Source: Glycera tridactyla
Lineage: Eukaryota
Length of the DNA stretch: 64,000 nt
Direction: 5' to 3'
Assembly (NCBI GenBank): GCA_965644265.1
Contig: OZ286476.1
Span: 20,150,001 to 20,214,000 of the forward strand
The translations under genes were made by a program, and so were the position numbers. How positions within the stretch are numbered: the first letter of the stretch is position 1; every line of letters begins with the position of its first letter. Below the pieces are notes generated by a model. The model was not told where the DNA came from and made no database searches. It saw only the letters and a list, made by a program, of their open reading frames with translations. Of this stretch, positions 826 through 60,814 are shown piece after piece.

Positions 826-1020
826 ACTGATCGTGAACGTGTTGAGTTCGTGAAGGTTGAACGTGAAGACATTGAGCTGTCTAAACATGAACCAAGGAAG
901 AAGGAAGTGAAAGAAGAGGAAGTCGCTCCGGAGGAAGAGAAGGGTGGATATCAACGTCAGCCCAAGAAGAAGCCTGAAGAAAAGAAAGATGAGCGCGATT
1001 TGGATATGGGCAAAGCTGAG
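826..1020 (+). CDS. Exon A, PEVK-like charged linker (TDRERVEFVKVEREDIELSKHEPRKKEVKEEEVAPEEEK...DMGKAE), phase 0-0
   Basis: ttgtag|ACT at 826 and GAG|gtatgt at 1020; 195 nt; E/K/P/V-rich. Confidence 0.85.

Positions 1021-60814: not shown

Follow-up and report, generated by a model that had tools for sequence, protein, structure and literature searches.

A titin-like gene of Glycera tridactyla with giant phase-1 exons and a 15.6-kb coding block omitted from the abundant transcript

Gene structure and reading frames

The window analysed here, the whole 64,000-nt stretch of Glycera tridactyla contig OZ286476.1 (positions 20,150,001 to 20,214,000), was rebuilt as an 11-exon gene model from open stretches, Pfam matches and splice sites. 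The exons, named A to K, all lie on the + strand and, when joined, encode 7,672 aa without a stop. Matches to the I-set immunoglobulin (Ig) family, with E values from 1e-9 to 1e-13, were found in B, C, D, G and J and at the start of K, with a weak match at the end of F. The Ig exons measure 259-270 nt.

Exon A (826-1020, 195 nt, phase 0-0) encodes a charged linker rich in Glu and Lys; it is flanked by AG and GT, has an open frame and matches no Pfam family. Single I-set Ig domains are encoded by exons B (2615-2873, 259 nt, phase 0-1; Pfam E 1.9e-9, with splice sites), C (3538-3804, 267 nt, phase 1-1; E 9.5e-14) and D (9374-9643, 270 nt, phase 1-1; E 4.3e-9) and, further downstream, by exon G (40080-40349, 270 nt, phase 1-1; E 1e-12). 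Exon H (41454-41531, 78 nt, phase 1-1) is a mini-exon of PEVK type, rich in Pro, Glu and Ala. An Ig domain is then split over two exons: its first part lies in exon I (45954-46030, 77 nt, phase 1-0), as judged from splice sites and frame, and its second in exon J (47030-47216, 187 nt, phase 0-1), which matches profile positions 32-84 of the I-set family (E 4e-10). The single-exon I-set domains, the 78-nt PEVK-type mini-exon and the names of the Ig relatives, titin and obscurin-like, bear out the titin-like identity given to the gene in an earlier note on this DNA.

The three giant exons are E (13249-24714, 11,466 nt, 3,822 codons), F (34557-38387, 3,831 nt) and K (54698-60814, 6,117 nt). Each has a pyrimidine tract and AG at its 5′ side and GT at its 3′ side, each has a length divisible by 3, and in each the sole open frame starts at the third base, which makes all three phase 1-1. 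The open frames run for ~3,856-3,858 (E), ~1,287-1,290 (F) and 2,011 (K) codons. No other ORF of at least 250 aa was found in any frame on either strand of the whole window. From the ~3,858 stop-free codons kept in E, set against a largest other ORF of less than 250 aa, we infer that E is included in some message. The product of E would be an orphan, disordered sequence rich in Ser, Asp, Glu and Arg. In F, ~1,185 aa of acidic unique sequence are followed by a diverged I-set Ig (aa 1186-1276); in K, an I-set Ig (aa 1-90, E 7e-11) is followed by ~1,950 aa of unique sequence rich in Glu, Val, Thr, Pro and Lys.

The letters left by the phase-1 donors are C, C, G, G, G, A, G, G and G, and never T. 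Pairing each phase-1 donor with each acceptor available to it by skipping gave a sense codon at all 36 of 36 junctions, with no stop. The frames, flanking dinucleotides and lengths thus agree with the earlier description of E, F and K as phase 1-1 exons and multiples of 3, and so does its claim that any skipping combination keeps the frame without a junction stop, every donor leaving C, G or A. Symmetric phase permits skipping but is no evidence for it, since it is forced on any internal exon that stands between phase-1 Ig exons.

Runs of N are present in the D/E intron (10089-10294, 10305-10573 and 12314-12460), the H/I intron (42788-42983) and the J/K intron (50947-51095). None touches an exon, so the reading frames are independent of gap length. 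A small exon could be hidden inside a gap. In the readable introns, a search for hidden phase-1 exons (AG...GT, 60-330 nt, open, with a pyrimidine tract) returned two candidates, neither of them Ig-sized or PEVK-rich. No tRNA genes were found in the window.

Splicing of exon C to exon G in RNA

Three small RNA runs (X1-X3), from three samples of one study, were found by a search with exon F. Their assembled contigs, from which rare forms are dropped, were placed on positions 34450-40400. The contigs that covered exon G (40080-40349) exactly and with 0 mismatches were 1.2, 2.7 and 4.1 kb long and had depths of 150-180. In all three runs, the 30 loose letters 5′ of 40080 were exactly those of 3775-3804, the end of exon C, which is followed in the DNA by GTAAGT. 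The loose letters 3′ of 40349 were those of 41454-41483, the first 30 nt of exon H. The depth over the unique intron sequence 38430-39424 was 0 in X1-X3, showing that these runs represent spliced RNA.

The main mRNA in X1-X3 therefore splices C, from its donor at 3804, to G, at 40080, and continues from G to H, leaving out D, E and F. The intron removed, 3805-40079, is 36,275 nt long and holds all three exons, which are omitted together: 15,567 nt of coding sequence, or 5,189 aa. This splice makes the D-E-F block optional. The earlier note had proposed that the giant exons were skippable through three splicing choices. Skipping was observed in the main mRNA of three runs for E and F, together with D; the three independent choices were not, as a single block skip was seen.

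One of the contigs ends 344 nt past exon G, a distance equal to H, I and J plus 2 nt, which may point to a branch at the J donor. No junction fits the ends of the remaining two contigs. At position 41463, in exon H, X1 and X2 carry T, and X3 and the window carry C, an Ala/Val difference. This change and differences of 0-5 % in F suggest that the species is highly polymorphic and that the RNA was taken from other individuals.

Exon F was represented by 12 short contigs of depth 2-4, covering about a fifth of the exon length when summed over the three runs, at roughly 1-2 % of the depth of exon G. All 12 fell within the exon, and the ~1.4 kb of unique intron next to it had none, so that unspliced RNA is disfavoured as their source, though only at p ~0.02. 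Among the contigs of X1-X3 placed on 34450-40400, none crossed E/F or F/G or ran from F into the intron, nor did any read or contig span D/E, J/K or the junction past K. The contigs differed from the window at 30 positions, 13 synonymous and 17 non-synonymous; at a site ratio of 1:3.8, this corresponds to a pN/pS of ~0.34 (p 0.004). Their indels, of 9 nt and of 1+1+4 nt, kept the frame. These data support F as a constrained coding exon that is weakly transcribed, with a signal at the assembly threshold (depth 2-4).

The RNA contigs also contained a MITE-like element of ~180 nt with inverted ends, which lies at 39613-39803 in the F/G intron; a second copy at 30074-30249 adjoins an 85-nt tandem duplication (29940-30109). 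The summed depth over this element was 1,600-2,100, with many variants and internal deletions; the element therefore belongs to a transcribed repeat family that has many copies in the genome.

Sequence composition and codon usage of the giant exons

Residue counts matched the earlier descriptions of E as rich in Ser, Asp, Glu, Arg and His and of F as strongly acidic. E contains 14.1 % Ser, 10.5 % Asp, 9.2 % Glu, 8.3 % Arg, 6.0 % Lys and 4.0 % His, and its hydropathy ranges from -0.6 to -2.4. No Pfam family was found in E, a word search over proteins of 2,100-6,700 aa returned no relatives, and aa 1380-2579 had 0 matches when scanned in full with HMMER against 1.84 billion representative proteins. 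A treacle-like disordered protein was considered as a relative and rejected, as the Atlas feature score was only 0.75-0.77 and recognition ~800, with no real match. The only repeated parts of E are three dispersed modules of ~50 aa at 17410-17520, 19100-19260 and 20220-20380 (aa ~1388, 1952 and 2325), which have a common hydrophobic core and 30-60 % identity, and three to four tandem 95-aa repeats at 21213-22085 (aa 2655-2945); E is otherwise unique. FFAT-like motifs were looked for in all three giant exons and detected as a single weak core, in E.

F contains 13.0 % Asp, 12.3 % Glu and 12.1 % Ser. A run of 26 Asp is encoded by a perfect (GAT)26 at 35762-35839, and a run of 18 Glu by an imperfect (GAG)n at 36155-36208. 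RNA contigs break at both microsatellites, and the lengths of the two runs are therefore probably polymorphic. Self-comparison detected no internal repeats in F. The Ig at its end (38114-38386) scored 21 bits against the I-set profile, below the Pfam cut-off of 23.7, as a diverged domain. Glu-rich motifs of the titin PEVK region are reported to be cation-responsive; that polyacidic F might likewise respond to divalent cations is speculation by analogy.

K consists of 13.8 % Glu, 8.7 % Val, 8.4 % Thr, 8.4 % Pro and 7.2 % Lys, with P+E+V+K amounting to 38 % overall. The PEVK rule of more than 40 % P+E+V+K in 250-aa windows (PMC12063666) was applied to all three giant exons. Residues 251-1240 of K passed (maximum 0.49), F was marginal at aa 431-710 by virtue of its poly-Glu run, and E never passed (maximum 0.31). 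The last third of K is made up of three tandem repeats of ~253 aa (58141-60444, aa 1148-1915), 63-95 % identical and predicted to be disordered; AlphaFold2 gave the repeat a mean pLDDT of 37 from a 3-row alignment, which we take as disorder. The term PEVK-like, as applied to K in the earlier note, thus fits about half of the exon (aa 251-1240) and not its last third. Neither Tandem Repeats Finder nor self-comparison detected a period of ~28 aa (PPAK) in K. Two copies of a basic motif stand amid the acidic sequence of K, at 55900-56031 and 56638-56769 (aa 401-444 and 647-690), each with a short Y-E-x-T-P-F-G-P lead, four Lys and then KPREKPKPRK. This motif could be a putative binding site, of actin type or of nuclear-import type.

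Relatives of K were found through its Ig only, namely obscurin-like 1, titin and a sea-cucumber 'putative titin' at 45 % identity, and an Ig alone does not fix orthology. A 1,000-aa query from K (words from aa 1-320) matched only the sea-cucumber titin Ig in the protein collection, which may lack Glycera tridactyla. As E has no matches and K is matched through its Ig alone, the unique sequences of E, F and K are, on sequence grounds, best described as orphan, fast-evolving disordered chains. The signs of disorder are the lack of a Pfam family in E, its hydropathy, the charged fraction and the low pLDDT of the K repeat. The different chemistry that had been ascribed to the three exons is real in terms of residue make-up; it does not extend to charge, as the charged fraction is 0.32-0.34 in all three and the net charges are -209 for E, -230 for F (over 1,276 aa) and -219 for K.

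Codon usage divides the exons in another way. The GC content at third codon positions (GC3) is 0.64 in B, C and G, 0.68 in I and 0.55 in D and J. In the Ig of F (38114-38386) it is 0.31, against 0.64 in B+C+G (Fisher p 5e-8), and in the Ig of K (54700-54969) it is 0.43 (p 8e-4). GC3 lies at 0.31-0.36 in the unique parts of the three giant exons (0.31-0.34 in E), and the GC content of the introns is 0.38. Relative synonymous codon usage (RSCU) is shared by E, F and K (mutual r 0.87-0.91) and differs from that of the small exons (r -0.1 to -0.2). Because the split holds between Ig domains, it is not simply one of folded versus disordered sequence.

The simplest reading of these codon counts would be that codon selection acts on exons of the abundant message and hardly on rarely included ones, which would group K with E and F. 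Weaker constraint in disordered sequence could also account for the low GC3 of the giant exons, and GC-biased gene conversion among the stand-alone Ig exons could account for their high GC3. A link between splicing frequency and codon bias has been described for Dscam exons (PMC2741454). If selection linked to exon use is indeed the cause, the GC3 split (0.64 versus 0.31-0.43) would be a DNA-only read-out of constitutive exons in giant genes, and codon-usage contrast would offer a cheap prediction of exon usage in such genes without RNA.

Interpretation and comparison with known systems

We favour, with a probability of about 0.68, the reading that the window is part of the I-band-like extensible region of a giant invertebrate titin/connectin-like muscle gene with an optional D-E-F block. 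The short Ig exons B, C, G and I+J, with mini-exon H, would form the backbone, and the three giant phase-1 exons would encode long acidic, intrinsically disordered, domain-free chains. The D-E-F block (one Ig, 3,822 aa, ~1,185 aa and one Ig) would be included in a minority isoform that is probably muscle-type-specific. With 0.35 nm per residue, as assumed in PMC12063666, its inclusion would add ~1.75 μm of contour length between two Ig segments, 1.34 μm from E and 0.41 μm from the unique part of F. The filament would thereby become longer and more compliant, as with the spring exons of fly sallimus and vertebrate titin; the elastic role is proposed by analogy with these. K, a chain of ~0.68 μm, may be the same kind of module, and its codon usage suggests that it is used less than the backbone exons. 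It is a tentative and rather doubtful suggestion that E is among the largest optional internal coding exons known and that the D-E-F switch builds the very long sarcomeres of particular muscles.

A quite possible alternative, though one that we do not prefer, is that D-E-F alone is optional and K is a constitutive spring in all isoforms, which would reduce the three choices to one. Skipping of K was not observed, the main stretch that passes the PEVK rule lies in K, and every titin-like protein needs some spring. The codon data speak against it, however: K shares its RSCU with E and F, and its Ig departs in GC3 from the backbone Ig exons. The K query returned no K-containing Glycera tridactyla product from the protein collection, which may lack the organism. 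It is unlikely that the main use of E, F or K is as an alternative last exon. In that case the donor would go unused, translation would stop after few codons and the message would end at an intronic poly(A) site, so that the protein would be cut short and carry a long disordered end. Truncated forms of this kind are known in titin novex-3 and in the kettin form of sallimus. Stops do occur 2, 3 and 3 codons past the donors of E, F and K (24715-24722, 38388-38398 and 60815-60825), against 36-40 codons past those of G, I and J, but early stops are common in AT-rich introns and the tail of exon H is also only 4 codons long. An AATAAA/ATTAAA hexamer lies 145 nt past the F donor, but none is present for 964 nt past E or 1,493 nt past K. 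Low-level F RNA with no F/G junction seen would be compatible with last-exon use; 0 contigs, however, extend from F into the intron, and E, F and K all have good GT donors in the continuing phase.

Two further explanations address the RNA signals themselves. E and F could be relics that are spliced into no message, the F signal then being precursor RNA or DNA carry-over. Both exons are absent from the main transcript, F reaches only a small fraction of the depth of G, the GC3 of both equals the intron background and E is without relatives, all of which fits such a view. In the absence of selection, however, stops would have interrupted frames of 3,858 and 1,290 codons, the F variants are biased to synonymous changes with all indels in frame, and the low-depth F contigs are confined to the exon limits, so that we consider relics very improbable. 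More improbable still is that the C-to-G join reflects a second gene copy or a haplotype without the 36-kb stretch rather than splicing. The join is documented from RNA runs, but its two sides are precisely a GT donor and an AG acceptor of matching phase, G is matched with 0 mismatches, and the same contigs carry the G-to-H splice.

The optional-block reading can be set beside several known systems. Vertebrate PEVK consists of tandem 26-28-residue PPAK modules and poly-Glu motifs, with ~70 % P+E+V+K; K, at 38 % and without 28-residue PPAK periodicity, differs from it, and no homology is detectable for the unique sequences. Exon H is sized like a titin PEVK exon, and D-E-F is laid out like the titin N2B element, as Ig, long unique sequence and Ig. 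Large exons encode the long repeat or charged regions, lineage-specific in sequence, that separate Ig segments in C. elegans TTN-1 and crustacean I-connectin; the spacers there are built from short tandem repeats, whereas E and F are almost repeat-free. In vertebrate titin, Rbm20-driven skipping takes place between exons 50 and 219 (PMC3575840). Many small exons tune length there, and a few giant ones would do so here. Giant ankyrins (ankyrin-G, ankyrin-B and Drosophila Ank2) carry optional single giant exons, unstructured and of independent origin in flies and vertebrates, that lengthen the scaffold (PMC6660793). This is an analogy only: the two systems differ in cell type and role, and Pfam finds Ig families alone in all exons of the window, with no ankyrin repeats, ZU5-UPA or death domains.

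To our knowledge, almost nothing is known of titin in animals other than vertebrates, flies and nematodes. Two titins of mixed character are described for annelids and molluscs, and annelid muscle sarcomeres reach up to 40 μm (PMC12063666 and work cited there). Literature searches on the splicing of annelid and mollusc titins and on polychaete connectin yielded nothing usable, and neither annelids nor molluscs nor giant exons are dealt with in a paper on titin evolution (PMC12198301). The present locus would provide a concrete titin case in a third animal branch, one known for extreme sarcomere lengths, in which a 15.6-kb coding block is dropped. It would also indicate that a gain in length need not be PEVK, as it could be supplied by an orphan Ser/Asp/Glu/Arg-rich chain and a polyacidic chain.

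The closest comparison is with Drosophila sallimus. Titins set passive stiffness and, in flies, sarcomere length by means of optional spring exons; PEVK exons 31 and 32 of sallimus are very large single exons encoding a disordered spring (~1,700 aa for exon 32), which one muscle type removes by splicing and others retain, and which set I-band and sarcomere length (PMC12063666). Both genes are invertebrate and titin-like, with tandem Ig exons and giant exons for disordered, probably spring-forming sequence. The block here, however, is three times larger (5,189 aa, of which a single exon supplies 3,822 aa), the largest of its exons is rich in Ser, Asp, Glu and Arg with at most 31 % P+E+V+K, and no sequence similarity was found. 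The principle of skipping is thus already known from sallimus and vertebrate titin, and what sets this locus apart is the size of the block, the 11.5-kb orphan, non-PEVK exon and the split in codon usage.
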